From assembly GCA_025594325.1 (NCBI GenBank), contig JANHCV010000010.1, positions 1 through 64,000 of the forward strand: a DNA stretch of 64,000 nucleotides. Reading direction: 5' to 3'. Positions 5,285 through 25,477 of the stretch are shown piece by piece. This DNA is from Blastocladiella emersonii ATCC 22665 (Eukaryota; Fungi; Blastocladiomycota). A program made the translations under genes and the position numbers. The notes beneath the pieces were generated by a model, which searched no databases, was not told the DNA's origin, and worked only from the letters and a program-made list of their open reading frames with translations. Every line of letters starts with the position of its first letter. Within the stretch, counting starts at the first letter, position 1.

Positions 5285-6613
5285 GCGTACGCGGACGGCT
5301 GGTACGACGCGGACCGCCCGGGCCCCGAGGGCGTCGCGCGCGCGGGCTCTGCCGCCGTGTTCCCGCTGCCCGACGGCTACGACACGGCCAAGCGCTTCGC
5401 CGCCGAGTGCCGCGCGGTCGCCAACGGCGTCATGGACGACGACATGGGCCACGTCGCCGCCGCCAACCTCCCGCCCGGCCCGTTCTCGTCGACGCGCGCT
5501 GAGATCCACGCGTTCGTCCTCGCCGTGTCGCAGGTCGCCGCCGGGACCGCGCTGCACATCTTCTCGGACTCGCAGGCCGCCATTGAGGCCGCGCGCACGC
5601 AGCTCTCGCCAACGGCAACGGTGCGCCAGCGCGTCCGGTGCGCGTCGAGCGACCTGTGGTCCGCGCTCCGCCTCGTGCTGCGCGACCGCAACGTCACGGT
5701 CACCTTCTCGTGGGCCCGCGGCCACGCCGACGACCCGACCACGCCCAACAACGTCGCCGGCCGCGCCGCCAAGGCCGCGGCGAACCAGCCTTCCGCCACC
5801 GACGCGTACCTTTCGAAACGCACGCTCACCGAGTCGGACCTCCACCACGTCCCCGCCTTTTTCGACCACGAGAGTGGCGGCGACCCGCGCAAGTCCATGC
5901 GCAACCTCGCGCAGGCCGAGTGCCGCGACGCGGTGCTCGCCGAGAACGTGGCGCACCTCGCGCTCGCGCAGCCGCCGCCGCCCGAGCCCGTACCCGCCAA
6001 CGCCGCTGCAGCCGCCGCTGTAGCAGCTGCGAACGCCGCCGCCACCCAGGCCGAGGAGCTCGACTGGGAGGCGACCGCGCTCGCGCCCCACGGCGGGTCG
6101 CGCCCACTCGTGCGCCGCACCTCGCGCGACCAGAACAAGGAGACGTCGTTCCGCCTGCGCGCGCTCGCCAACAAGCTGCCGTGCCGCGAGTCGCTGCACT
6201 TGGTCGGCCGCATCGCTGTGCCCACCTGCGGCAGGGCCGAGTGCGCCGCCGAGCCGAACCCCAAGGCCCGCTGCATCCAGTGCTGTGACGCCGACTTCAA
6301 GGCATCTCGGTGCTCGTGCGGCCTGCAGGATACGCCGTTCCACTGGTTCCAGTGCAAGCTCGTGGACGAGCAGCGCGTCGAGACGCTCAACCAGATCTCC
6401 GAGTCGTGGCTCAGCCAGCTCACGTCTGTCGGCGCGGCCAAGCACAACGCCGCTCTAAACCCCGCCGCCGGCACGCTGATCGACGCGCTGCTCGGCCCTG
6501 ACCTGCTGCACGTCATGCACCTCGACGTCAACACGCTGCGCGCCGACCGCGACGCAGCGCTCGCGACCCGCGTCGCGGCGATCCCTGCCTGGGCGTCGCG
6601 CGCCGCGACGTAA
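5285..6613 (+). pseudogene. RNase H and zinc-knuckle-like C-terminal region of the LINE ORF
   Basis: The frame of ORF 5357..6613 extends upstream to AYADGW (Y codon at 5288). Acidic RNase H residues in YADG, RAE and SDS. Cys/His cluster in ...CIQC...CSC...HWFQC. Confidence 0.85.
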
Positions 6614-6659
6614 AGGAGGCTGGCCTGCCGATCCCGGGCGAGGACGCGCTGCCGCCGCT

Positions 6660-8480
6660 TCTCGACCTGCCCGACGCCGCCGCAATCCGCCTGTTCTCCC
6701 GCGCCATCACGCGTGGCGCGGTGCACGCGCGCCGCGAGTTCCTGGGCAGCCTGGCCGCCGCCGCTGCCGCGATCGCGCTCCACCCGCTCCCGTCCCCGCA
6801 CCACCTCGAGGTCAAGGGTATTCGCGGCCCCGCCCTGCGGAAGCCCATGCTCACCTGGTTCGCCCGCGGCCACGCGGCCCGCGAGTTCATTACAGCCGCC
6901 GTCGCGCCTGCCTGCATGCTCCACCACGGGCTCGACGCCGACGACGCCGACGACGCCGTCATGAGCGGGTTCGCCGCCGTCCCCGCCGAGCTCGTCAACG
7001 AAGGTCAAGTCGTCCCGCACCCGCCGCTGCTCCTGCACCACTCGTCGTGCCACTGTACCCGCTCCTCGGCGCGCTCGAGGCCGGCATGGCCGCCGCGATG
7101 CTCGATTCCGCGGTTTTGGGGGACGCCCACGCCGCGCCCCCCGTCCTCCTGTGGGCGTGGTCCATGTGGTCGCAGTGCCTCGTGCAGCACGAGCTCAACC
7201 TGCAGCTCGACCTCACCGCGCTCTAGCGTGACCTCGTCGCCGCCTGCATGCACCTGCTGCGCAACGTCCCCGCGACGTGCCCGCGACGCGGATCGCGAGC
7301 GCGACCGAGATTGTCTCGACCGCGACGTCGAACCTTGAGCAGCTCGGGCTCGCCTGGATCCACCTCGGGCTCGCGTTCATGGAGCTACCACTACATGCGG
7401 CAGCTGCAGGGGAGCCTCGAGCTCGAGCTGCAGGTGCGCCTCGCGCTGCAGATCCGCGACAACGACATGTCCACCAACCCGACCATCGAGTGGCTCCGCG
7501 CGCGCCTCGCAGCGGTCCCGAGCCGCTGCTGCCCATCATCACCCAGAAGAGCGACGCGCTGTCCCACAACCAGAACACGCCCGACCTCCCCGCGCCCACC
7601 ACGTCCGCGTTCGGCCACGCGCTCCACCACTACCCGGAGCCGTGCGCCACGCAGCTCGCCGCCGCGCCCGCGTACCGCGACGCCCGATCCTGTCCTTTTC
7701 GGTGCAGCTCGCGCGCATCGCCGAGGTCCCGCTCCCGCTCGCCGAGCTCATGGCGGAGCTCACCATGCACGAGGCGTCGACTCTGCTGCAGGTGCGCAGG
7801 AAGGCGTTGGCTGACCCAAGCACTTCCGCGATATGGGCCTGTCGTGGCGCCACGCACACAACCCCGTGTCCGAGGACGTGGTCGTGCTGTCGCCCATCGC
7901 CGACACCCCGCGCGTCGCCTTCAAGCCGCTCGTCGACGCGGTGACCGTCTACCACCTCCGCCTCGTCGCGCTCATGACGACGACGGCCAAGGTGCTCAGG
8001 AATCGCTCGCACGTCATCCATCACAACCAGGCCGAGTGCGCCGTCAGGTACGCCGCCGACCTGTACAAGTTTGTCGTCGTGGAACGCCGCGCTCTCGCGC
8101 CGGTCGTCGCCCTCGTCGCGGACCTCGACGCGCTCACGGCCATCGACGCCCCGTCAGGCCACTGGACCGCAGACCCCGCCATCGTCCGCGAGCTCCTCGC
8201 ACTCAGCTCCATCGTGCTCGTCACCAAGCGCGTTCTCGCGCTCGACCTGCGCGCTCCGCGCGCCGCGCCCGCCGTAAACAGCGCTCCGCGACGCCGGCAC
8301 CGACTTCCTCGGCCGCTTCCGCGCCGCGTACCCGAGCGATACGGAAGCGGTGTCTGTCCTTAACGCGGCCCTCCCGCGCGAGCGGTTCGCGGCCAAGGCC
8401 GCCGCCCGCGCCGAACTCGAGTCGCACGCGCGCACAGCGGCCCCGTTTCTACTTTATGTCGACCGTCCTCGCTTTCTGAT
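6660..8480 (+). pseudogene. Fragmented coding-like sequence, at least partly resembling the midasin helical linker
   Basis: GC3-biased short frames include LGLAWIHLGLAFMEL and YMRQLQGSLELELQVR...NPTIEWLRARLAAV, which recall the midasin linker (GRLWVSLGLL...HPHVRLLRQRM, from memory). In-frame stop at 7224 and many frameshifts. Confidence 0.4.
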
Positions 8481-11400
8481 CAACTTCATTGACTCGAGTT
8501 GAGCGCAAGCCTAACACTCGGGACAGCGGCAGGTCGTGATCGAAGTTTGGCGGCGGTCTCTTCGCTCAGACGCTCGCTCCCCCGAGAATCTGACTAGACC
8601 GTAAGGTTCGCCGGCGTCCTTCGCAACGCGCTCGATGCCACCGACGCAAAACTCGAGTACCAGTGCGCTACCATGCTCGAGCTCTATGACGACGCGTTTC
8701 CCGTCCCCCACGTCGCACTCTTCTGTCCGCCGCAATCGCATGGGGCAAGTTGCCGGTTCTCGCGCCACCCGTTCACGACCACGGGCCACGCGAAACGCCT
8801 GCCCGAGAGCATACATGTCGCCGTTGCCACGATCAAACCGGCCGTGCCCGTTCTCCACCCCACGCAGCTACCGTGGCCTTTTGCTTAGATGATTGCAATC
8901 TTGGGGCAAGTGTGAGCATTCAGCTTCGACAGAGAACCTACTTGAACACGGGCAGGAGGCAGACCGCGCGAATTCGGGTCGCCGTCGGCACGCACGCACG
9001 CGCGAGGTGAGCGTGAGCGTGAGTACGCTGAGCAACGGACGCATCCTAGGGCCTCGCTCGGGCCGCGCGGCAAAAGCGTGAATCAACAACGCGGTACGGC
9101 GGGTGCACGCGCGCGTCAAGGACGGCGACGCGAGGGGCACCGCCGCCGTGGCCGCCGGTTGAGCGAGGCGGCAGCACCCATGCTCTCGCGAAGCAGCAAG
9201 CCGCCCGCCAGCTGGGCTAGGCTACGAAAGCGCGAGGTCATAAAGCAGCAGGTGCGAAAGGCAGCGCGGCAAGGCGCGGCCGACGAGCAGCAGCGGATCC
9301 CGAAGCGCACCCAAGCCGCGGTAGCCGCTCGCGGCGGCGCACCTCGCGCGCACCTCGCGCGCACACCAAACGCTGGCCCCGCTCGTGCGTGCGCGTGCGC
9401 GTGTGGCGACGACTCACCTGGCCCGCCATGAAGTTGCCGAGGCTGTGAGCACGTCCATGTAGGTCGGCTCGAACGGAGGTCGTGCGGCTCGGGAATGCAT
9501 GCCAGCGGGGGACGAGCAGGTGGCCGGCGAGGACGACGAAGCGGTCGCGGTGGTTGGGTGAGGTTCGGCAGTGCAGATCGGCGGCGTGGGGCGACAGGGG
9601 GACCGGAACGAGGCGAGCGAGCGAGGGACGCTGGCTAGCGGGGGCCCGCCGCCAAAGCAAACCTTTGCATGCGACTAACGTAGGGCAGCACGGCAAGCGG
9701 AAGGCGGCGTTCCCGACAAGGACGACGGGGACGGACGAGCTGCATAGCTGACGAAGCAGTCCGACTGACGCTCAGCTCAGTCGTACAGTAGTAGCGGTAC
9801 AGCAGATGCGGCTGGGCACCTCGCGGCGGCGCCGATCCGCGTCAGGGCCTGTCCGGCGTGATGTTGCATCAAGTTATCACGTTGCATCGGCTTTCATGGT
9901 CATGGTGCATGGGGCGGCAGTCGGTGGAGAAGAGAGAAGAAGAAGGCTCTGGCCTCCTCACGTCTCCCCATCCCTCCCGAAGCGCGCCCCGCAACGCGTC
10001 AGTCGCCGTCAGCTGACAAAGACGCGCAGCGCGGCGGCCACGGCGCCATGGCCACCGCGTGGCGTGGCGCGGCCTCGGTCGGTCGGTCAGGCACCCCGCT
10101 CACCTCCATGTCCATGTGCACGTCAACAAGGCAAGGCACGACGTGGCACTGTAACTTGATGGAATCGCATGAACCTCGCCCGCAGCGTGCTCCGCGGGCT
10201 GCTCGCTCCATGGCATCGCTCTCGCGCTTGAGCGCTGCAGCAAGCGACCTCCTTCTGTCGGCGTCAAACAGCAGCACAGCTGGTGGTCCTCTCCTCGTTC
10301 CGTATGCATGTGGCCGAGCGGGTGCTGTCGCATGCGCCGCGCCGCGCCGCGCCGCGCTTGCCCGCCGCCGCCACCACCACCACTCCACGCTCTACGTGCC
10401 AACCAGCGCGTTTGCCCTCGTCCGCGAGCTCGACGGCCTTCGCATGCGCACGTCCGCGCCGTCGCCCCCAATCGTCGCCACTCCTCCCTCCGTGTGTAAC
10501 CCAACGCGCGCGTCGCCCTGCTCTGCCCCACCGCGTCCCGCCCCTGACCTGCTGCCCCCGTCCGTCGCGCCGACCAACGTTTCCGCTCACGGTCGTGCAC
10601 CGCTTCGAGTGTCGTTTGCGCGCCATCGCCCTTGACCACCGCCCGTCCTCGACGCTGCGGACCCTGCTTCGAATCAGCTCGCCCTGCCCTCCCCAACTCG
10701 GCGCACCTCGAGTCGAGTCGAGTCGTCGCTGCCGAGCTGGTGCCGAGCTGCTGCTCCCTCTCGCACACGCCCTCTTCTTCCCCCAAAGTCGGAACGACGG
10801 TCGGAGCTCGAGCGGCGCGCGCGCCATCCGCTGTCGCCGCCCCCGTCGCGGACTACCAGCAGGCCCGTCCGTCGTCTCTCGCTACAGCTACCTCTCGGCT
10901 TGTACTTTATGTGTCCGCGGCTTCTGGCCCTCGTTTCTTCCTCGCGCGGCGCGCCCGCTGCAGCAGCGGCTGGGCGCACCGACGACCTCCGAGATTCTCG
11001 CTCGGCTCGGTGTGGGCCGCCCCCGAACGTCGCCGCCCTGGGCGAGCGAGCGAGCGAGCGCGGCGCAGCTGTGGGATCAACGTCGGCATGTCCGTGGACG
11101 CAGCCGGCCGGCCAGCTGAGCAACGAACGTCTCGGCCGTCACGCTGGCTGGTAAGCGTACGGGGCGGCGAAACGCCATCGAAACGGCCGCGCCGGGCGTG
11201 CGTGCTGCTGTGCCGCGCCCGCAGCCTTACGATGCCTTACGATGCCTTCGCCCGAACCTGACGCTTGGCCGCTCAAACGTTCCCGCGTCGTTGTATTCGC
11301 CGCTCGCGAGCGCGCGCGGGTGCGTGTGCTCGCGAAGCCGCGGTCGGTCGTCCCGGCTCGCGAGCCATGCCGGCGTCGCGGGCGCGATCGACCTCACCCA

Positions 11401-14040: not shown

Positions 14041-16844
14041 TCACTGCCGCTGAGGCGATCCAGCAGCGTGGTGCTGTTGCGACTGGATCTGCTGCTGGTG
14101 GTGGCGATGCGGGTGCTGATGCGGGTGCTGGTGTGAGCGATCCGCACCGGCAGCGGTGAAGCTCGCGTTCCACCGGTCCGAGTCGGTGTGCTGGTACGTC
14201 GGCGGCGGCGGAGGAGGGTGGTACGAGGCCGATCGCTGTTGCTGCGGCGTCCGTGACTCGACGTGCTGCTGCTGGCCGTGGTAGTAGGCGTCGTGGTAGC
14301 GGTCGTGCCCGGATCCCGAGGAACGCGCGTGCGCATCCCACGAGGACGGCGGCGACGCATCCCAGCCCCAGCTCGGCGGCGCCTGGTTCGACGGCGCCGT
14401 CGAGCTTCCCGTTACCGGACTCGCTGACGACGAGGACGGGCAGACACGGCGTGCCGGTTGGTGTGGTGGCGGCGACGACCATGGCTCAGGCGCGTGGACA
14501 TGGCCGTGCCCACGAGGATGCGCGGGATGCCCGTAGTGCGCGAGGTGGTGGACAGGGTGATGCTGCTGCTGCGGATGGTGGTGGTGGTGGTGGTGGTGGT
14601 GGAACGGTTGAGGGTAGGGCGCGTGCGGGTATGAGCGGTAGCTGCCAGCAGGATCAGGGCGGCGTGCAGAGTTGGCAGAGTCGACGCGCCGCCGCTTCGA
14701 CGGGCGTTGCGAGTCCTCGCTGTTGTCGGCCTCGTGGTCGTTTGGTCGACGATCGTGACTCGGTCGCGTCGCGGAGGCCTGCGAAGCGGCCGGCGGTCTC
14801 GGGGCTGGCTCTCCATCAGGAGCATCGGTGCCGGGTGCTGCAGCGGAAATCCCCACGGGCGTCTCGCTCCCCGAGAGCATGCGCTGGAGGAGGTTGCGCT
14901 ACGAGAGGCAGAGTAACACTGGGTCAGTCGCAGATCGAGGAAGCCGTGCTATTCTCATAGCAGACGCACCTCGACGAGCAGGTCCCGGATCTGGCGCGAC
15001 TGTTGCGCAATCACGTCCCGCTCGACGGCGAGCTGGTGCTCGACCGCACCGACGCGGTCCATGAGCCACATGTTGTCCTGGACGAGCTGCTGCATGCGCT
15101 GATCGACGTGGAGCTGCTGCTGCTGTTGCTGCTGCGAGTCGTAGAACTGGTCGTGGTAGCCGTCCTGGGCGCGCGAGTGCGACTGCGACTGCGACTGCTG
15201 CTGCTGCTGCTGCTGCTGCTGCGCCTGCGACTGCGACGCCGAGGTAGGTGGTGGGCGGTGCGGCGGATGCTGGGGAGGACCCATGGAGTGGTCGACGTCA
15301 GGTAGCGGGGGCGGCTCGCGGTCAGTCGACCGGTCGGCGTCGGAGCGGGAGGGTGCCGCAGCCGAACGCGGAGACGACGGGAGCGAGGCGTGGCCGCGGT
15401 GGCGCGAGGCAGGATCTGCCGAAGACGAGCGACCACGCGACGCTGGAAGGTCATGCTCGGCGGAGGGTACAGGCGACGGACGCAAACCCGCCGCGTGCAG
15501 TCGGCCACGCCGAAGCAGGGGCGACGAGAGCGAGGCGGGCGGGTCGAGTGGTGCGTCGTCGAGGTCCATGAGCGGCCCGGGCGAGTGCCCACGCGACGCG
15601 GCATGACCATGCGGCAACGGCGACAAAGGAAGCGGAGGCGGCAGGGAACCGAGCACGGGATGGTGCAGCGCGTGATGGGGTAGCGGTGCGGCGCGGTCGT
15701 AGGCGGCAAGGTCCGCCGGCGCAGCCAGAGGGTCGGCGGGGAGCGAGGGAAGGACCATAGCGGGCGGGTCATGGTGCAGATCGGGGTAGCCGGTGCCGTG
15801 TGCGGACGCGGGCGGCAGATCGTGGGCGGGCGACTGCGGGTGCAGGGTCAGCGGCGGCGGGGGAAGCGGGTTCGGGTGCTGCTGGTGGAGCATCGGAATG
15901 CTGGTGCCGCCGGCGGCCATGGCGCGGTTGACGCTGGCGACGGCGGCGTCGCGCAGGTCGGGCGGGAGGTTGACCATGTGGCACGAGTGGCTGTCGCGGT
16001 GGCGGGTGAGGGCGTCGAGGCGGGCAAAGGACCGGAAGCAGTGGGTGCAGGTGTAGGGGCGGGCACCCGTGTGCAGGCGCTGGTGACTGCGAGGAGGGCA
16101 AGGAGGCAAGGGCGGCGGGTGAGCGACTTGTGGGGGAGAAGCGCGGACGGAGGCCGAGGCAAGCAAGACGTACCGCTTCAGGTCGTGCTGGCGCGAAAAG
16201 GACTGCTGGCACACGTCGCAGGCGAAGGGGCGCAGGTTGCGGTGGGTGAGAACGTGCGACTTGAGGTTCTGGAGGCGGGCGAAGGCGGCGCCGCACTCGT
16301 CGCAGGTGTACGACTTGGCGGCGGTCGCGGGCGAGGCAGGCGTGGCGGTGGCAGCCGGGTCGGCGTCCGTGTCCTCGGCGAGATCGACGGGTGGTGCAGC
16401 GGCCGAGTCGTAGGCGTCCTCGTCACCGTCACCGTCACCGTCACCGTCGCGGACGTGGTCGAAGACGGGTGCGGCGCCGGTCGGATGCTGGGCAGCAGAG
16501 AGCGGCGCGTCATCGAGTGCAGCGGCGGCGGCAGGGTCGAAGGTGTCGTCGGGCGGCCCGCGCGGGTGGGAAGCAGCAGCCGAGTGCGGCGGCGCGGGGG
16601 CGGCGGGCTCGGGGTCCGAGTCGGGTGGGTTCGGAGCGGCTCCGGCGTCGGACGAAGACGAGGTCGAGGATGCCGAGGAGGAGGAGGGATGGCCCGAGTT
16701 GTGCGAGGAGAGGGCGATGCCCGAGTCGGGGCGGTCCAGCGAGGGCGGCGAGGAAGACGACGAGGACGGGGAGGAGGATGAGGCCGGGCGAAGGTCGGCA
16801 GGAAGCGCAGGCGCGTCGCTCGCGGCGGCAGGCGCCGTGTCCAT
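14041..16844 (-). CDS. C2H2 zinc-finger transcription factor (3 fingers plus coiled coil), 3 exons
   Basis: Fingers YTCDECGAAFARLQNLKSHVLTH, FACDVCQQSFSRQHDLKRHQRLH, TGARPYTCTHCFRSFARLDALTRH. GT-AG introns at 16087-16173 (in frame, splits finger 2) and 14899-14969 join ORFs 14955..16844 and 14041..14880. Confidence 0.92.
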
Positions 16845-18582: not shown

Positions 18583-21513
18583 ATGCTCAACCCGCAGTCG
18601 CCGCCGCCCGCCCGCCCCGCCACCGCTGCCGGCGCCGCCGCGCTCGTCGCCAAGCCGGGCACCGCGCCCGCGACCAAGCCGCTGTCCGCCGCCTCGTCCT
18701 CGTCCAAGGACGCGCCCGCGCGCCGCACCCCGCTCGCCCACCACGCCCTCGGCACCGGCGCCGTCCATACCACGCACACGCAGCACCCGCCGCCGCAGCA
18801 GCAGCAGCAGCAGCGCATCTGCAAGGGCCGCGTCGCCAACCTCGAGTCCAACGTCCCGCCCGCCTGGTGGTCGCACGTTTTCGACCACGTCTACCTCAAG
18901 ACGGACGGCGACGTGGTCGAGGACCCCGAGATCACCCGCTCCGAGGTCGACATGCTCGAGTCCTACCCCTACCTCGCCGCCGTCTTCAAGCGCGGCTCCG
19001 CCTCGGCCGCCGCTTCCTCGCCCACCCCGCCCCGCGTCCTCGACCTCTGCTGCGGCCAGGGCCGCCACGCCCTCGAGCTCGCCAGACGCTACCCGCGCCT
19101 CGAGATCTACGGCTACGACCAGAGCGCCTTCCTCATCGACCTCGCCCGCCAGCGCGCACGCGACCAGGGCGTCGCCGACCGCTGCCGCTTCGCCGTCGGC
19201 GACTGCCGCCACCTCCCCTTCCCCGCCGACGCCTTTGACCTCGTCCTCATCATGGGCAACTCGTTTGGCTACTTCACCTCCTCGGCCTCGGACCTCCTCG
19301 TCCTGCGCGAGTGCCACCGCGTCTCCAAGCCCCACGCCTACCTCGTCCTCGACCTCACCGACGGCCACTACCAGAAGCACCACTTCTCGCCCCGCACCTG
19401 GGAGTGGATCGACGACGACACCTTCGTCTGCCGCGAGCGCCAGCTCGCAAAGGACGGCAAGTCGCTCGTCTCGCGCGAGGTCGTCACCGACGTGACCAAG
19501 GGCGTCGTCCGCGACCAGTTCTACGCCGAGCGCCTCTACGAGCTCGACGAGGTCGAGATGCTCATGGAAATGGCCCTCTACACCCCCGCCCGCGAGATGC
19601 ACGCCCGCACCTCCACTGCCGGATCGGCCGGCTCGGCGGGCCCCGCTGCCGGCGCCTCCCTCGTCGCCGCTCCGACCTCGCCCGTCCCGCACCTCCTCGT
19701 GCGCAGCCCCTCCACCCAGACGGGCCGCGGTCTCTCCAAGTCGTCGAGCGCCGCCAGCCTCGCCTCGGCCGGTGCCACCGCCGCCGGGCTCGTCACCACG
19801 GCCGCGTCAGCCGGCGGCGAGACGCTCGTGGCCGCCAAGGAGCTCAGCAAGCGCCAGGAGGACCTCGGCATGATGGGCCAGCGCATGGTCGTCATTGCAT
19901 GCAAGGAGCCGTCCTCGTCGTCCTCGTCGGCCGCTGTTCCGACCCACCGCGACGACGCGGCCCTCTTCGCCGCCTTGTTCCACTCCACCACCCCGATCCC
20001 CGACACGGCGTCCGAGGCCGAGGGCTCGACCTACGCCGGCTCGTCCGAGTACGACCACCGCGAGCACGAGCACGACCACGACCGCCGCCACGAGCACTCG
20101 TACACGGACGACGTGGACCTGCACCGCGCCACGCCCGTGTCGTCGACGGCCGACGGGACCGTGGCCGACTCGGCCTACTGCGCCAGCGTCGCGGCCAGCG
20201 TCGCCTCGCTCGCCACCCGCTCGGGCGCCACCACTTCCACGGCCACCACAAGCACGCCGATCGAGGCTCTGGCCTCGCCCGTGCCCGTGCCACGCATCGG
20301 GCAGGTGGTGGTGATCCTCGGCGACCCGTCGATTGGGTGCGTTGGCAAGCTGCACGACACGTGGAACCCCGAGGACCTGGCGACGCGGCAAAAGCTGGTC
20401 GAGGTGCTCGACGCGGCGGGTGCGTGGTCCGTGGCCGACGGCACGCTGCGCATCGTCGACTCGCACGCCGACCTGATTGGCGAGCTCGCGGCGCTGGCGC
20501 GCACCCGCGGCCGCCTCGCGCACTCGCCCAACACCAACGGCAACGTCGAGAAGGAGGACGAGATGGACGTGGTCGTGTTCAACCTGTGCGACGAGGGGTA
20601 CTGGAACGACGCGCTCAAGGAGCTGCACGTGCCGGCGCTGCTCGAGATGCTGCAGCTGCCGTACACGGGGGCGACGCCGCAGTCGCTCGGGCTGTGCTAC
20701 GATAAGGCGCTGGTCAACTCGCAGGCGCGCGCCATGGGGATCCCGACGCCGCGCGAGGCCTACTACCTCGGCAGCCTCGCGGTGGCGGACCCGGCGACGG
20801 CGGACGCGGACCTGGACCGGCTCGTGGCGGCGGCCATGTCGGGCGCCGGGCCCGGCGCGCAGTTCCCGGCGTTTGTCAAGCCGATGCGCGGCGACAACTC
20901 GCTCGGGATCACGGCGCGGTCGGTGGTGCACAACGGGGCCGAGCTGCACGCGTACGTGCGCGAGCTGCACGGCATGGGGCTCGGCGACGTGGTGATCCAG
21001 GAGTACCTGACGGGGCCCGAGTTCTCGGTGGGGGTGATCGGCAACCCGCGGTCCGGGTTCCGGTTCCTGCCCATCCTGCAGGTCGACTACTCTGCGATCG
21101 TGGCGCGCAACCTGGTTCCGATCCTCGGGTTCGAGTCCAAGTGGGACCCGGCGAGCCCGTACTGGACCGAGATCCGGTACGTGGCGGCGACGGGGCTCGC
21201 GCCGCGCGTGGTGGAGCTGCTGCAGGCGCGGTGCGCGGCGCTGTTCGAGCGGTTCGGGTGCCGCGACTATGCGCGGTTCGACTTCCGGGCGGACGGCGGG
21301 TTCGCCGTGGACGGCGCGGCGGCGCAGGAGGACGCGGACGCGGCGGCGGGGCGCATCAAGCTGCTCGAGGTGAACCCGAACCCTGGGTGGTGCTGGGACG
21401 GCAAGCTCGCGCACATGGCCAAGCTGCAGGGGCTCGAGTACCGCGACCTGGTGCTGCTGATCCTCGAGGCGGGCGTGCGGCGGATGGCGGCCGAGAAACG
21501 CGCGAGCGCGTAG
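18583..21513 (+). CDS. Class I SAM-dependent methyltransferase fused to a D-Ala-D-Ala-ligase-like ATP-grasp domain (976 aa, intronless)
   Basis: Methyltransferase motifs VLDLCCGQGRH, YGYDQS, GDCR, FDLVLIMGNSFGYF. ATP-grasp motifs VVFNLCDEG, LPYTGA, CYDKA, FVKP..GDNSLGI, IQEYLTGPEFSVG, DYARFDFR, LEVNPNPG. Confidence 0.9.
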   Translation: MLNPQSPPPARPATAAGAAALVAKPGTAPATKPLSAASSSSKDAPARRTPLAHHALGTGAVHTTHTQHPPPQQQQQQRICKGRVANLESNVPPAWWSHVFDHVYLKTDGDVVEDPEITRSEVDMLESYPYLAAVFKRGSASAAASSPTPPRVLDLCCGQGRHALELARRYPRLEIYGYDQSAFLIDLARQRARDQGVADRCRFAVGDCRHLPFPADAFDLVLIMGNSFGYFTSSASDLLVLRECHRVSKPHAYLVLDLTDGHYQKHHFSPRTWEWIDDDTFVCRERQLAKDGKSLVSREVVTDVTKGVVRDQFYAERLYELDEVEMLMEMALYTPAREMHARTSTAGSAGSAGPAAGASLVAAPTSPVPHLLVRSPSTQTGRGLSKSSSAASLASAGATAAGLVTTAASAGGETLVAAKELSKRQEDLGMMGQRMVVIACKEPSSSSSSAAVPTHRDDAALFAALFHSTTPIPDTASEAEGSTYAGSSEYDHREHEHDHDRRHEHSYTDDVDLHRATPVSSTADGTVADSAYCASVAASVASLATRSGATTSTATTSTPIEALASPVPVPRIGQVVVILGDPSIGCVGKLHDTWNPEDLATRQKLVEVLDAAGAWSVADGTLRIVDSHADLIGELAALARTRGRLAHSPNTNGNVEKEDEMDVVVFNLCDEGYWNDALKELHVPALLEMLQLPYTGATPQSLGLCYDKALVNSQARAMGIPTPREAYYLGSLAVADPATADADLDRLVAAAMSGAGPGAQFPAFVKPMRGDNSLGITARSVVHNGAELHAYVRELHGMGLGDVVIQEYLTGPEFSVGVIGNPRSGFRFLPILQVDYSAIVARNLVPILGFESKWDPASPYWTEIRYVAATGLAPRVVELLQARCAALFERFGCRDYARFDFRADGGFAVDGAAAQEDADAAAGRIKLLEVNPNPGWCWDGKLAHMAKLQGLEYRDLVLLILEAGVRRMAAEKRASA

Positions 21514-22351: not shown

Positions 22352-25300
22352 ATGTCCGCCTCCACTCGATCGAAAGGATCCGCAAAGTCCGCCAGCGTCA
22401 AGCTCGCCGCCTCGCCCTTCGCCGACCTGCACGCCAAGTACCGCGCCTCGGTCGAGCAGCTCGCCGCCATCTTCCCCGACTGGACCGCCGACGACCTCGT
22501 CCTGACCCTCGACGAGGCCCACGGCGACGCCGAGCTCGCCACCACCCGCATCCTCGAGGGCCACGCCGCCCAGTGGAGCGCCGCAAAGTCGCTGTCCAAG
22601 AAGAAGGCCGACAAGAAGCCAAAAGACGCTGCCCCCGTCTCCCCGGCACCCGCATCCGCGTCGCCCTTCCCCGGCGCCGCCTCCGACGCCGCTGCTGCCG
22701 CCTCGGCCGCGCCCTCCTCCTCGCCCTTCTCCGGACCCCGCTCGGGCGCCGCCAACGCGTCCGCGACCGGCCGAGGTCGCGCCCAGCGCGGTGGCGATGC
22801 TCGCGGTCCCCGCGACTCGAACGTGAGCCAGAACCAGAACCAGCGCGACCGCGAACCGCGCGGCAGACCCCGTGGCGGTGACCGTCGCGACGGCGCGAGA
22901 CAGCCCAACACCAACAACCAGCAGCAGCAGCAACAGCGCGGCGGTCGCGGCGACCACCACGACCACCACCCGCGTAACGCGCGCGGCGGCAACACCACCA
23001 GCAGCAACAAGGGCCCCGCCGACGTCAACTGGCACGATGTCACCCCCGTCGCCGCCGTGTCCTCGGCTGCGCACACCACCCCCGCCGCCAACAACTGGGC
23101 CTCGATCGCCCGCTCCTCGGCCGCCCCTGCCCCTGCCCCTGTCGCTGCTGCCGCCAGCAAGCCCGCCGCCGCTGCGGCGCCCTCCCCCGCTCCCGCGCCC
23201 GCAGAAGCCGATGTGGACCCGTGGGCCGCCGATGCCGAGACGGGCGCCGGCGCGGACGCTGATGCGGACCCGTGGGCCACGGCGGATGCCGACGCTGACG
23301 CCGAGGTGCTCGCCGTCACCGCCGCCGCCGCGTCGCCCGTTGCGCGAAACCGCAGCCCGTCGCCCGCCCACCGCTCGCCCTCCCCCGCCAAGTCGGCTTC
23401 CCCTACCGCCGCCGCGGCTGCCTCCCCCGCGTCGCGTGCCGCGCCCGCCGCCGCTACTCGTGGTACCCCCAAGCTCGGCTGGAACGGCATCTCGTCCGCT
23501 GCCGCCCCCTCGGCTGCCGCTCCCGCTGCGGCTGCCGCCAAGCCCAAGTCGACGTGGGCCCAGATCGCACGCCCCGTCGTGGCCGCCCCTCCCGCCCCCG
23601 TCGCCCCCGCCAAGAAGGCTGCCCCGGCCGCCAAGCCCGCTGCCGAGCGCGCCGCCTCGCCCGCTCGCTCCGCGTCCCCCACCAAGTCGTCGTCACGCAG
23701 CCAGTCGCCTGCGCGCACCGCCGCTGCTGCTCCCGCCGCCGACGCGTCGCGCGGCCGCTCGCCGTCGCCCAAGCCCCTCGCTGCCGTCATCCCCGAGCCG
23801 ACGCGCATCCCGAGCCCGACCCGCTCGCTGTCGCCCTCGCGCAAGTCGCCCTCCCCCGTCCCGACCCCGTCGTCGCCCACGGCCGCCTCGTCCAAGCCGC
23901 AGTCGCCCCGCCCGCGCTCCCCGTCGCCGCCCCCGCGCGCCGCCTCGCCCGTCGTCACCAAGCAGGCTGCCGCCAAGCCGGCCGCCGCCGTCGTCCTCCC
24001 CGCCCACGTCCCGATCCCGACCCTCGGCGTCACCTTTGGCCAGTTCAACATTGACGACGATGAGGAGGAGGAGGCCGCCGAGCCCATCGAGACCAAGAAG
24101 GCCCCCGCTCCCGCGACCATCCCGTCGCCCAAGGCCCGCGCCGCCTCGCCCGTCAAGCGCGCCCCGTCCCCGGCCAAGCCCGCCGCGCGTCCCGCGTCGC
24201 CGCCCAAGCCCGCCGCTGCTGCCGTCGAGGAGGCCAAGCCGGCCGCCGCCCCCGTTGCCGCTGCTGCTCCGGCCGTCGTCGCCACCACCCCCACCACCAC
24301 CATGAACCCCGCGACCGCGACCCCGTTCACGTCCATGCACCACCAGCACCACCTCCAGCAGGCGGCCCAGCCCGCCCAGCAGATGATGCAGGGTTTCCAG
24401 CAGTACGGCTACGGCCAGCAGGCCCAGCAGTCTCAGGCGCAGCAGTCCATGGGCATCGACCTCGCGACGAACGCCTACTACTCGGCCGCCGCTGCTGCCG
24501 CGGGCACCAACCCGGGCGCCGGCTACGGCTTCGGCATGATGGGCATGAACATGGGCATGGGTATGGGCATGGGTATGGGTCTCGGCGGTCCCGCCGACCT
24601 CTACGGCTACGGCATGCACTCGCACGCTGCCGCTGCTGGTGCCGCCGCGGCCGGTGCCGACCGCAACCTCATGGGCGCCTACTACGACCCCAAGGCCGCT
24701 GGTGCTGACGCTTCCGGTGCCGGCGCGCAGGGCGCCAACGCCACGTCGCAGCCGCAGCAGCCCGGTGCCGCCGCCGGTGCGCAGCAGCCGTCGCAGGTCC
24801 AGCAGCAGCAGGCTGCGGCCGCGGCTGCCGCTGCTGCTGCCGCCGCCGCCGCGGCCCAGCAGGGCTACATGCAGCACGGCTACCCCAGCTACGGCTACCC
24901 GTACCCGTACATGATGCAGTCGTTCCACCAGCCGCAGCACTACCAGCACGCCGCCGCGCACTCGCCCGCCAACGCGTACCAGCAGTACATGAAGCCCGGC
25001 GCCGCCGCCGGCATGATGATGTACGGTCCCGGCGCCGCCGCGGTCCCGCAGACGGCCGCGCAGGGTGCGGCCGGTGCTGGCGCTTCGGCCTCGGGTGCCG
25101 CGGGTGCCGCTGCCGGCGGCGCGGGCAAGCCCGGGTCCGGATCCGGCGCGTCGGCGGGCGGGTACTACGACGACTCGCAGCAGCAGGCGCAGCAGGCCCA
25201 GGGCGGGTACATGTCGCAGCAGCAGCCCCAGCAGCAGCAGTACGGCTACGGTGCGTACGGCCAGCAGTGGCCGCAGCAGCCCCAGCAGACGCAGCAGCAG

Positions 25301-25477
25301 CAGGGCGGCTCCCAGGCCGCCGCGCAGGGCCAGGGCCAGCAGCAGCAGGCCAATAAGGGCGCCTACTACAGCAGCACCGGCTACCAGGCCGCTGGTGCTC
25401 AGGGCGCGGGCCAGTCCCAGCAGCAGCAGTACGGCTACGGCCGCCAGCAGTACGGCGGGTGGAGCCACGGCAACTGA
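22352..25477 (+). CDS. DEF1: DEF1-like RNA polymerase II degradation factor (N-terminal CUE-like domain, Q/G/Y-rich low-complexity tail)
   Basis: N-terminus KYRASVEQLAAIFPDWTADDLVLTLDEAHGD...RILEGHAAQW fits the fungal Def1 CUE-like pattern, followed by P/A/S-rich and Q-rich regions. Single 1041-aa ORF. Confidence 0.75.
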   Translation: MSASTRSKGSAKSASVKLAASPFADLHAKYRASVEQLAAIFPDWTADDLVLTLDEAHGDAELATTRILEGHAAQWSAAKSLSKKKADKKPKDAAPVSPAPASASPFPGAASDAAAAASAAPSSSPFSGPRSGAANASATGRGRAQRGGDARGPRDSNVSQNQNQRDREPRGRPRGGDRRDGARQPNTNNQQQQQQRGGRGDHHDHHPRNARGGNTTSSNKGPADVNWHDVTPVAAVSSAAHTTPAANNWASIARSSAAPAPAPVAAAASKPAAAAAPSPAPAPAEADVDPWAADAETGAGADADADPWATADADADAEVLAVTAAAASPVARNRSPSPAHRSPSPAKSASPTAAAAASPASRAAPAAATRGTPKLGWNGISSAAAPSAAAPAAAAAKPKSTWAQIARPVVAAPPAPVAPAKKAAPAAKPAAERAASPARSASPTKSSSRSQSPARTAAAAPAADASRGRSPSPKPLAAVIPEPTRIPSPTRSLSPSRKSPSPVPTPSSPTAASSKPQSPRPRSPSPPPRAASPVVTKQAAAKPAAAVVLPAHVPIPTLGVTFGQFNIDDDEEEEAAEPIETKKAPAPATIPSPKARAASPVKRAPSPAKPAARPASPPKPAAAAVEEAKPAAAPVAAAAPAVVATTPTTTMNPATATPFTSMHHQHHLQQAAQPAQQMMQGFQQYGYGQQAQQSQAQQSMGIDLATNAYYSAAAAAAGTNPGAGYGFGMMGMNMGMGMGMGMGLGGPADLYGYGMHSHAAAAGAAAAGADRNLMGAYYDPKAAGADASGAGAQGANATSQPQQPGAAAGAQQPSQVQQQQAAAAAAAAAAAAAAAQQGYMQHGYPSYGYPYPYMMQSFHQPQHYQHAAAHSPANAYQQYMKPGAAAGMMMYGPGAAAVPQTAAQGAAGAGASASGAAGAAAGGAGKPGSGSGASAGGYYDDSQQQAQQAQGGYMSQQQPQQQQYGYGAYGQQWPQQPQQTQQQQGGSQAAAQGQGQQQQANKGAYYSSTGYQAAGAQGAGQSQQQQYGYGRQQYGGWSHGN

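Follow-up and report, generated by a model that had tools for sequence, protein, structure and literature searches.

D-Alanine-D-alanine ligases and VanA-type ligases (EC 6.3.2.4; PF07478, TIGR01205) are the described enzymes closest in structure to one half of the fusion protein reported here: the ATP-grasp fold, the residues for ATP, Mg and the transition state, and the omega loop are shared. By architecture, the whole protein can be likened to Ngg (also PA3460 or SMb20482), which is described in PMC8070244 (citing Sagot 2010) as a bifunctional GNAT and ATP-grasp enzyme that makes N-acetylglutaminylglutamine, the NAGGN osmolyte precursor. According to the same account, this N-blocked dipeptide is made without an NRPS or the ribosome. 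The likeness lies in the joining of an N-capping enzyme and an ATP-grasp former of the peptide bond in one polypeptide. The other half of the fusion resembles NmbA, CypM, CcbJ, and TylM1/DesVI: all of these have a Rossmann core with a β-strand cap, and all methylate an amine nitrogen. NmbA is the bacillithiol Cys-N-methyltransferase, and the bacillithiol pathway (BshA/B/C) is reported in no eukaryote (PMC12719100). In addition, Sun et al. 2016 (PMC5005798) listed a "D-alanine-D-alanine ligase" of Batrachochytrium dendrobatidis, gene family 20, as a candidate for horizontal transfer from bacteria. The row gives a bacterial best match with an E value of 8e-167 and 39% identity, together with a SAM-methyltransferase GO term, and the family was assigned to peptidoglycan and D-alanine metabolism as a transfer into B. 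dendrobatidis. We infer that the B. dendrobatidis homologue in our set (P0018) is gene family 20, since the row carries no locus tag.

The window, that is, the whole stretch of DNA that was analysed, comprises 64,000 nucleotides of Blastocladiella emersonii ATCC 22665 (positions 1 to 64,000 of contig JANHCV010000010.1). A single uninterrupted ORF with an ATG start occupies 18583..21513 on the + strand, as do all parts of it given below, and codes for 976 amino acids plus a stop; the stop-to-stop frame around it covers 1007 amino acids. The preliminary description had named one intronless 976-aa ORF with low-complexity inserts and had quoted several motifs. The ORF listing and an entropy scan confirmed the ORF and the inserts, respectively, and every quoted motif was located: WWSHVF at aa 95-100, YLKTDGDVVED at aa 104-114, LDLCCGQGRH (SAM motif I) at aa 153-162, and, in the C-terminal part, CRDYARFDFR at aa 893-902 and KLLEVNPNPGWCWDGK at aa 926-941. 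The gene is a single copy in the 32.6-Mb genome, with a GC content of 0.72 and a GC3 of 0.96. It is in a subtelomeric position, 17.7 kb from the telomere, and its 1.7-Mb contig has a telomere array at the end. The neighbouring genes, a C2H2 gene (14955-16844, − strand) and a CUE-domain gene (22352-25477, + strand), are ordinary eukaryotic genes, and both are likewise long uninterrupted ORFs. The remark in the preliminary description that most neighbours contain introns is therefore doubtful.

The protein begins with a low-complexity extension (aa 1 to ~85; 18583..18837), delimited by alignment A1 and the entropy scan, which is unconserved and which the bacterial homologues do not have. Long low-complexity stretches were detected at about aa 1-83, 314-422, and 484-585, and shorter ones at aa 127-151, 188-209, 444-464, 726-768, and 885-929. 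Of the long ones, two match host-style inserts, one inside the methyltransferase fold and one between the domains. The former (aa ~346-417; 19618..19833) comes just ahead of the final conserved part of the methyltransferase domain and is absent in the bacterial homologues (columns 480-550 of A1). The latter is the interdomain linker (aa ~446-575; 19918..20307; A1 and entropy scan), rich in Ser, Thr, and Ala and containing a stretch rich in His, Asp, and Glu; in bacteria it is only about 25 residues long.

Pfam, the AF2 model, and Foldseek place a class I SAM-dependent methyltransferase domain, consisting of a core and a four-strand cap, at aa ~86-345 (18838..19617). The Pfam match is to Methyltransf_25 (PF13649) over aa 152-250, with 74.7 bits against a cut-off of 27. 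SAM motif I (LDLCCGQGRH; 19039-19068) is invariant among the aligned homologues. The last conserved segment of the domain, found in A1, follows the insert (aa ~418-445; 19834..19917) and carries the invariant motif DLGMM..R (19858-19884), with the invariant A1 columns R272, D275, L276, G277, M278, M279, and R282. Judging only from its position, this segment would be the last strand of the methyltransferase fold. The AF2 model of the domain has a pLDDT of 92.3. Its top Foldseek matches, CcbJ, CypM, TylM1/DesVI, CalS10, NmbA, CgnL, and GNMT, are amine N-methyltransferases with a β-strand cap, and most of its structural neighbours act on small molecules. NmbA (9RI2) is also the best PDB match by sequence, with an E value of 5e-17 over about 160 residues reaching into the cap. 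The identity with NmbA in the structural alignment is 25%, whereas the members of the NmbA orthologue cluster share 35-95% (PMC12719100). Unlike NmbA, the fusion possesses a family-specific WW..F...YLKTDGDVVE block (18865-18924) and family-specific cap motifs, WEWID..FVCRER and GV..DQFYAERLY (19396-19539), and its domain is joined to a ligase. From these matches, the domain is likely to be an amine N-methyltransferase built like NmbA, CypM, CcbJ, and TylM1. This assignment is not certain, because a few C-methyltransferases (PsmD and SeMT) are also among the structural neighbours.

The pathway to mycosporine-like amino acids combines an O-methyltransferase with MysD, a Ddl-like ligase. It was dropped as a model, since the methyltransferase of the fusion is of the Methyltransf_25/11 type with N-methyltransferase neighbours. 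DsyGD, the DMSP enzyme, was likewise dropped as a precedent for a methyltransferase joined to an ATP-grasp domain: the paper describing it does not mention ATP-grasp.

The second domain (aa ~576-976; 20308..21510) is an ATP-grasp ligase of the Ddl type, as seen in the AF2 model (pLDDT 91.9), Foldseek, a profile search against the PDB, and hhalign. All of the top 50 Foldseek matches in the PDB are Ddl/VanA-type ligases, with TM scores by target of up to 0.80, and the profile search found VanA with an E value of 3.5e-25. Pfam Dala_Dala_lig_C matches aa 760-961 with 51 bits against a cut-off of 24; the N-terminal Ddl domain of Pfam was not reported in the protein. The conserved motifs of the domain are GDPS...WNPED (20314-20385), NLCDEG..N/ELHVPALLE (20581-20646), CYDK (20695-20706), KP.RGDNSLG (20872-20913), QEYLTGPE (20992-21024), ESKW of the omega loop (21127-21165), RFDFR (21259-21288), and LLEVNPNPGWCWDGK (21358-21405). 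The hhalign alignment with E. coli DdlB (probability 99.4) does not extend to the N-terminal substrate-1 site or to Glu15 of the Glu15/Ser150/Tyr216 triad. In the aligned part, Lys97, Lys144, Glu187, Lys215, Arg255, Asp257, Glu270, Asn272, and Gly276 of DdlB are kept, whereas Tyr216 is replaced by Trp, His280 by Asp, Ser281 by Gly, and Leu282 by Lys. Both the kept and the changed positions are invariant or nearly so across 121 homologues. The omega-loop lid, which is typical of Ddl enzymes with small substrates, is also kept. The fusion of a SAM methyltransferase with a Ddl-like ligase, with intact catalytic motifs, as stated in the preliminary description, is borne out by Pfam and by the DdlB alignment; the AF2 models (pLDDT of about 92 for both domains) and Foldseek lead to the same two enzyme groups, Ddl/VanA and the amine N-methyltransferases. 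It should be mentioned that the pocket for the second substrate is rebuilt in comparison with Ddl/VanA: Trp stands for Tyr216, and Asp-Gly-Lys for His280-Ser281-Leu282. In the B. emersonii protein this pocket is lined with Trp854, Trp936, Trp938, and Tyr860/Trp861, which might cage a methylated ammonium group. Furthermore, unlike Ddl/VanA, the N-terminal subdomain of the ligase has invariant motifs of its own (GD, NxED, NLCDEG, and ELH), and the ligase is always joined to the methyltransferase; its bacterial carriers have a canonical Ddl besides.

Orthologues extend across all zoosporic fungal lineages and also occur in choanoflagellates; the carriers include the amphibian pathogens B. dendrobatidis and B. 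salamandrivorans, Synchytrium, a potato pathogen, and Spizellomyces. Compact bacterial orthologues come, for example, from Hyphomicrobium zavarzinii and Methylohalomonas lacus. In animals and terrestrial fungi, the fusion was not seen, although the Atlas has a distant Ascomycota cluster in which a methyltransferase is combined with a Ddl-like domain. Bacterial relatives occupy at least 548 loci of bacterial species genomes. In two Atlas clusters of the fusion, Methanobacteriota is the commonest named phylum, and one of these clusters is 54% archaeal. The statement in the preliminary description that a similar fusion occurs in some bacteria and methanogenic archaea agrees with this; in bacteria the fusion is widespread. 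The nearest relatives are those of other Blastocladiomycota (61-65% BLASTP identity; the Catenaria orthologue is 77% identical over the conserved columns). Eukaryotic and bacterial copies share 45-47%, and the bacterial loci that were retrieved share about 60% or more among themselves. In the trees, fungi, choanoflagellates, and bacteria each form one clan, and the gene tree tracks the fungal species tree. When the tree was rooted at its midpoint, with a divergent bacterial subfamily beyond the root, the eukaryotes were nested among bacterial sequences. One ancient bacterial origin, followed by vertical descent and losses, fits the topology. As far as the sequences tell, the gene is of bacterial type, and the data fit a single, very early entry into the eukaryotes, no later than the base of the opisthokonts, with vertical inheritance thereafter among choanoflagellates and throughout the zoosporic fungi. 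Accordingly, the earlier proposal of horizontal acquisition holds as to the bacterial type of the gene and its nesting among bacteria, but not as an acquisition of this organism's own: the event would be single and ancient. A broad vertical distribution with a known function had been set against that proposal; the distribution is indeed broad and vertical, but there is no function on record. Compared with the candidate of PMC5005798, the family here spans all zoosporic fungi and the choanoflagellates, and it is not a true Ddl.

All-against-all clustering of the neighbouring genes across 70 bacterial loci found no conserved neighbour, and a conserved bacterial operon was rejected on this ground. 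SET-domain or extra ATP-grasp neighbours are confined to a few basal lineages. Two other candidate contexts were also rejected. An ORF of 53-60 residues just upstream of the gene in Rhodospirillaceae is a small membrane protein confined to that clade, not a RiPP precursor, and PADLOC gave only generic matches of the methyltransferase core to mad2 and MTase_II, not membership of a defence system. Searches of the literature by locus tag returned nothing, and biochemical or genetic data on any family member were not found there. The plasmid search gave only stand-alone ATP-grasps of about 30% identity, located beside a CapA gene on rhizobial symbiosis plasmids.

The wider ATP-grasp clade shows more varied associations. 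Tandem ligases and ligases fused to GNAT occur, a RimK-type ligase with GNAT is among the neighbours, and there are links to M3, M32, and S9 peptidases and to MFS transporters. Fusions of GNAT with a Ddl-like domain, in the style of Ngg, are found among the close structural relatives of the ligase. A dedicated SET-domain subfamily accompanies ligase relatives in two forms, one encoded by an upstream gene with translational coupling and one fused at the C-terminus; the two SET domains share 40% identity (E 6e-30). In addition, an LRR and ATP-grasp fusion is present in a Lokiarchaeia MAG, PrmA-type methyltransferases are fused to Ddl-like domains among relatives, and in two choanoflagellates an ATP-grasp domain is fused to a prolyl oligopeptidase, in Monosiga adjoining the methyltransferase-ligase gene. 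The prolyl oligopeptidase gene of B. emersonii is on another contig and is neither adjacent nor fused to the methyltransferase-ligase gene.

As an enzyme of the Ddl type, the ligase would be expected to convert a carboxylate into an acyl-phosphate and to join this to an amine in a peptide or amide bond. The methyltransferase would most likely methylate the free (α-)amino group of the substrate or of the product of the ligase. The predicted product would be a small N-methylated dipeptide-like molecule, which might be a compatible solute, a low-molecular-weight compound of the thiol type, or another abundant small molecule. The proposal of the preliminary description, in which a small molecule derived from an amino acid is methylated and ligated, is still the favoured one, and the amine N-methyltransferase affinities of the first domain strengthen it. 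In contrast to Ngg, whose cap is an acetyl group, the cap would here be a methyl group, put on by a class I methyltransferase; no GNAT domain was found by Pfam, and no asnO-ngg-peptidase operon surrounds the fusion at the 70 bacterial loci. The lack of a conserved neighbour at these loci and the very high conservation support a self-contained enzyme. The tandem ligases, the GNAT fusions, and the associated peptidases and transporters in the wider clade would support a small peptide as the product. The SET, LRR, and PrmA-type links of the relatives count against a small molecule, as these domains are known from protein modification. The full proposal, a self-contained bifunctional synthase of an N-methylated dipeptide-like metabolite, encoded by a gene of early bacterial-type entry, seems to us about equally likely to be right or wrong.

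In the main rival view, the enzyme acts on a protein or a ribosomal peptide: its ATP-grasp domain would attach an amino acid, as RimK, TTL/TTLL, and PGM1 do, and the amine so introduced, or one close to it, would next be methylated by the other domain, leaving a composite post-translational tag on a conserved target. The SET subfamily, with the fold of protein lysine methyltransferases, is tied to the ligase family twice independently, and the Lokiarchaeia LRR fusion, the choanoflagellate prolyl oligopeptidase fusions with the adjacency in Monosiga, and the PrmA-type fusions point in the same direction. The N-terminus of a peptide is what CypM, structurally close to the methyltransferase domain, methylates, and a stand-alone gene without metabolic partners would also suit a conserved macromolecular target. 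However, the closed Ddl architecture with its omega-loop lid and small pocket is kept, and the ATP-grasps that are known to tag proteins fall into other clades (RimK, TTL, and R2K; PMC4431377). No linked gene offers itself as a target, since the short ORF found upstream in one clade codes for the lineage-restricted membrane peptide, and most structural neighbours of the methyltransferase act on small molecules. Modification of a protein is thus considered unlikely, but as a candidate it has to be taken seriously. A more specific form of it is a composite tag of a kind not described before, placed on a conserved protein: an amino acid would be attached and its amine methylated afterwards. The system would have arisen in bacteria, flagellated opisthokonts alone would have retained it, and in some lineages it would have SET-domain, LRR, and prolyl oligopeptidase partners; we consider this form quite improbable.

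The protein is not a D-Ala-D-Ala ligase. The homologues bear that name in the sources, and the Ddl-like fold and catalytic residues would agree with a genuine D-Ala-D-Ala (or D-Ala-D-Lac) ligase that the fungus uses for a peptidoglycan-like structure or in the metabolism of D-amino acids. However, the protein reaches only 63.1 and 71.1 bits against TIGR01205 (cut-off 245.65) and NF002378 (cut-off 243), and NCBIfam has no dedicated family for the fusion. The D-Ala2 pocket is replaced at Tyr216, Ser281, and Leu282, and identity to the solved Ddl structures is only 17-24%. All five bacterial carriers that were checked possess a separate full-length canonical Ddl, scoring 240-346 bits, whereas the fusion scores 94-109 bits. 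Moreover, this function leaves the obligatory methyltransferase unexplained, and fungi, to which the host belongs, have no peptidoglycan. Its probability is very small. The intronless ORF, its bacterial type, and its subtelomeric position might also suggest a recent lineage-specific transfer into B. emersonii, or bacterial contamination or misassembly. This is practically negligible: the gene is situated between the C2H2 and CUE-domain genes on the 1.7-Mb contig with its telomere array, its GC3 is 0.96, its low-complexity inserts are host-style, and its nearest relatives are from Blastocladiomycota, in a gene tree that follows the fungal species tree. Contamination and misassembly, which the preliminary description had raised against itself, are ruled out by genomic context, composition, and orthology.

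The fusion is a very strongly conserved, uncharacterised bifunctional enzyme of zoosporic fungi, choanoflagellates, hundreds of bacterial species, and clusters with Methanobacteriota as the commonest named phylum. The names "D-alanine-D-alanine ligase" and "peptidoglycan biosynthesis", which are common for it in fungal genomes, are misannotations that this analysis corrects, and the published chytrid candidate for horizontal transfer would be re-dated to the base of the opisthokonts. Since the enzyme stands alone and needs no partner genes, it is readily testable. If the product is indeed a methylated dipeptide-like compound, it would be an undiscovered and widespread small molecule, for example, a compatible solute, a thiol-like compound, or a signal, and the gene would mark a metabolism that animals and terrestrial fungi have lost.

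The methyltransferase-ATP-grasp gene at 18583-21513 on the forward strand is one ORF, which starts with ATG and runs for 976 codons without interruption (stop-to-stop frame, 1007 codons); all motifs quoted in the preliminary description were found at their positions. It is present in a single copy in the 32.6-Mb assembly of 21 contigs. Pfam assigned a class I SAM methyltransferase domain (Methyltransf_25; aa 152-250, 74.7 bits) and a C-terminal D-alanine-D-alanine ligase (Ddl) ATP-grasp domain (aa 760-961, 51 bits). In NCBIfam, the matches to Ddl and UbiE were below threshold (63-71 bits versus cut-offs near 245), and no curated family covering the fusion protein was found. Alignment with bacterial and eukaryotic homologues showed that the N-terminal extension of the Blastocladiella protein is not conserved and that its two low-complexity inserts are absent from the bacterial members. 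One insert is inside the methyltransferase domain, ahead of the last conserved segment DLGMM..R, and the other is between the two domains.

The window opens with a telomere array of 889 bp (1-889; about 153 copies of AACCTA, G-strand TTTAGG). This means that the gene is subtelomeric, 17.7 kb from the chromosome end. It is head-to-head with a C2H2 zinc-finger protein gene (14955-16844, reverse strand) and is followed by a gene (22352-25477, forward strand) whose 1041-aa CUE-domain product has long low-complexity stretches rich in Q and A; both neighbours are long uninterrupted ORFs. The GC content of 0.72 equals that of the surrounding region, and GC3 is 0.96, compared with 0.88 in the CUE-domain neighbour. 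The eukaryotic flanks, the telomeric contig end and the base composition exclude contamination, misassembly and recent transfer, the first two of which had been raised as alternatives.

The closest proteins, those of Catenaria, Blastocladiella britannica, Allomyces, Sorochytrium, Paraphysoderma and Coelomomyces, mark the host as a blastocladiomycete. They are followed by dozens from Chytridiomycota, then by those of Gonapodya, Olpidium, Caulochytrium, Rozella and an aphelid, and finally by Salpingoeca rosetta, Monosiga brevicollis and two EukProt sequences clustering with them, including one of the choanoflagellate Barroeca monosierra. Animals, Dikarya, Mucoromycota and other eukaryotic supergroups were not among the best 120 matches of either protein search, the weakest of which (approximately 504-523 bits) were bacterial. 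Among the matches listed, flagellated aquatic opisthokonts have kept the gene, whereas neither animals nor terrestrial fungi show it. In the ESM Atlas, both domains are found in an Ascomycota cluster that is more distant (547 aa, 57 members, score 0.92).

Compact versions of 620-700 aa are encoded at no fewer than 548 loci, that is, at least 548, in species-representative bacterial genomes. The carriers are Alpha- and Gammaproteobacteria, including cultured Hyphomicrobium and Methylohalomonas, and Planctomycetota, Nitrospirota, Sumerlaeota, Hydrogenedentota, Omnitrophota and Eisenbacteria; the same search gave one Bathyarchaeia MAG. In two Atlas clusters of the fusion (one 54% archaeal, the other 65% bacterial), the commonest named phylum is Methanobacteriota. 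These results agree with the earlier statement that a similar fusion occurs in bacteria and methanogens. The term "prokaryote-style fusion" is likewise justified: the bacterial proteins share both domains with the eukaryotic ones and are 45-47% identical to them, and each domain contains long motifs that are invariant. Separate Atlas fusion families indicate that the methylase-ligase pairing arose repeatedly. Besides the Ascomycota cluster, the Atlas holds one of 375 members in Thermodesulfobacteriota, in which a PrmA-type methyltransferase is joined to a Ddl-like ligase, and one in Actinomycetota, in which the ATP-grasp partner of the methyltransferase is of CPSase type.

In a FastTree phylogeny of 183 sequences (87 eukaryotic and 96 bacterial), eukaryotes and bacteria were split at a support of 99, fungi and choanoflagellates were sisters, and Blastocladiomycota were monophyletic. 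IQ-TREE (59 sequences, LG+C20 PMSF), in which the bootstrap stopped short of full convergence, gave clans of fungi (UFBoot/SH-aLRT 98/86), choanoflagellates (100/99) and bacteria (100/99). The order within fungi, namely Rozella, the aphelid, Blastocladiomycota, Olpidium and chytrids, roughly matches the species tree. A further tree included a divergent bacterial subfamily of methyltransferase-ligases, which fell on the opposite side of the midpoint root. In this midpoint-rooted tree, which has SH-aLRT support only and long branches whose join at the root may be false according to the tool's warning, the eukaryotes form a 99-supported clade inside the bacterial radiation, sister first to the environmental protein P0206 and after that to P0092, which is on a bacterial contig. 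P0206 (L111, 8001-10010) is encoded on a metagenomic contig of 138 kb that is gene-dense and carries eukaryote-type genes, and its source could be an unrecorded compact eukaryote or giant virus. Genes for DHHC, ankyrin, filamin, giant protein kinase and SIR2-Ldh proteins are on this contig, with an MFS transporter gene adjacent. The simplest history is a single ancient transfer from bacteria to the opisthokont stem, or near it, after which the gene was inherited vertically and was lost from animals and non-flagellated fungi. Of the horizontal acquisition proposed previously, the prokaryotic origin is supported, since eukaryotes nest among bacteria in the midpoint-rooted tree; its date has to be moved back to one ancient event followed by broad vertical inheritance. 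Sun et al. (2016) listed a B. dendrobatidis "D-alanine-D-alanine ligase" among bacterial HGT candidates (PMC5005798), which appears to be the orthologue of the fusion.

The methyltransferase domain has its top PDB sequence match in 9RI2 (E 5e-17), which is NmbA, the enzyme that N-methylates the cysteine amine of bacillithiol (PMC12719100). An AF2 model of aa 78-345 (pLDDT 92.3) consists of a Rossmann core and a β-strand cap. Its top structural neighbours, CcbJ, CypM (a peptide N-terminal dimethylase), TylM1/DesVI, CalS10, NmbA, CgnL and glycine N-methyltransferase, are all amine N-methyltransferases; a few C-methyltransferases are also found among the neighbours. Since the best sequence and structural neighbours act on amines, the methyl acceptor is most likely an amine, probably an α-amino group.

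The ligase model (aa 578-976, pLDDT 91.9) matched exclusively Ddl/VanA-type ligases among its best 50 PDB hits, and the family profile matched VanA with an E value of 3.5e-25. In an hhalign alignment with residues 72-305 of E. coli DdlB, Lys97, Lys144, Glu187, Lys215, Arg255, Asp257, Glu270, Asn272 and Gly276 are kept. The omega loop is present (YEAKY in DdlB, [YF]ESKW in the fusion family). Conservation of the catalytic residues and this loop suggests that the predicted chemistry, involving ATP, an acyl-phosphate intermediate and attack by an amine, is preserved. Tyr216 of DdlB is replaced by Trp, and His280-Ser281-Leu282 by Asp-Gly-Lys within the nearly invariant PGWCWDGK. Judged from the alignment, the second-substrate pocket differs from that of DdlB and is unusually Trp-rich; we infer only that it would suit a methylated ammonium group. 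Besides the fusion (94-109 bits), all five fusion-bearing bacterial genomes examined have a canonical Ddl of full length (240-346 bits), which rules out the peptidoglycan D-Ala-D-Ala ligase as the identity of the fusion. The Hyphomicrobium carriers have a third Ddl-like gene (G001:C3:600562-601440 and G004:C7:179867-180745) whose frame spans about 490-500 aa and which scores 111-116 bits to TIGR01205; it may be of the GNAT + Ddl-like type seen in the Atlas.

Clustering of neighbours at 70 bacterial loci found no conserved partner of the fusion gene, which is stand-alone. A conserved single-pass membrane ORF of 53-60 aa, 10-40 bp upstream of the gene (L002, 7798-7959; L006, 7809-7991), is limited to one Rhodospirillaceae clade; a conserved secreted 90-aa protein is encoded further upstream in the same loci. 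In Berkiella-like gammaproteobacterial loci (L064, 3762-12447; L038), the fusion is flanked by an M3 oligopeptidase and a glutathione-reductase-type flavoprotein (disulfide-reductase type), together with a hexapeptide-repeat transferase, an extra Ddl-like ligase and an MFS transporter. At L055 (843-4260), an M32 carboxypeptidase gene lies 4 bp 3' of the fusion gene. In Monosiga brevicollis, the fusion gene (L103, from scaffold CH991550.1; 2273-4799, reverse strand) is head-to-head, across about 1.2 kb, with a gene for a 1210-aa protein joining a related Ddl-like ATP-grasp ligase to a prolyl oligopeptidase (6001-10479, forward strand). This ligase-oligopeptidase fusion is shared with Barroeca monosierra; no such neighbour was found at the Salpingoeca fusion locus.

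An exhaustive profile search with the ligase domain gave 1615 cluster representatives at E <1e-30, including stand-alone, tandem double ligase, ligase + GNAT and ligase + SET architectures, an LRR + ligase fusion in Lokiarchaeia and the ligase + prolyl oligopeptidase fusion of Monosiga and Barroeca. A stand-alone relative lies in the cluster order GNAT/DUF3335, RLAN/RimK, ligase and CitMHS transporter. The gene of P0092, the bacterial protein nearest to eukaryotes (L112, 625-5735), has a translationally coupled SET gene upstream (4 bp overlap) and two further convergent Ddl-like ligase genes downstream. On another contig, the related ligase P0235 carries a C-terminal SET domain that shares 40% identity with this SET protein (E 6e-30), and its gene directly follows a class I methyltransferase ORF. 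The similarity points to a putative SET subfamily dedicated to this ligase family. Other peptide-bond formers thus recur as neighbours or partners, as do N-modifying enzymes, peptidases and transporters, a pattern that suggests small-peptide metabolism.

A self-contained synthase of an N-methylated dipeptide-like compound is the best-supported model, and we hold it with moderate confidence. The Ddl-type domain would make the amide bond, and the NmbA/CypM-like domain would methylate the free amine of the ligase substrate or product. By analogy, the closest functional precedent would be Ngg, in which GNAT and ATP-grasp in one protein produce N-acetyl-Gln-Gln, with a peptidase gene in the same operon (PMC8070244); GNAT + Ddl-like fusions exist among the structural relatives of the ligase. 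The main rival, a role in protein or peptide tagging, is suggested by the SET, LRR, PrmA-type methyltransferase and oligopeptidase associations of the family. However, the active site of the fusion ligase is still that of a Ddl, closed and lidded, and small molecules are the substrates of most structural neighbours of the methyltransferase domain. For these reasons the synthase is given more weight, and tagging seems rather unlikely.

The family of which the B. emersonii gene is an ordinary orthologue is uncharacterised but remarkably conserved, and it bears a misleading name in databases. The fusion is a worthwhile target for enzymology and not a genomic oddity of B. emersonii.
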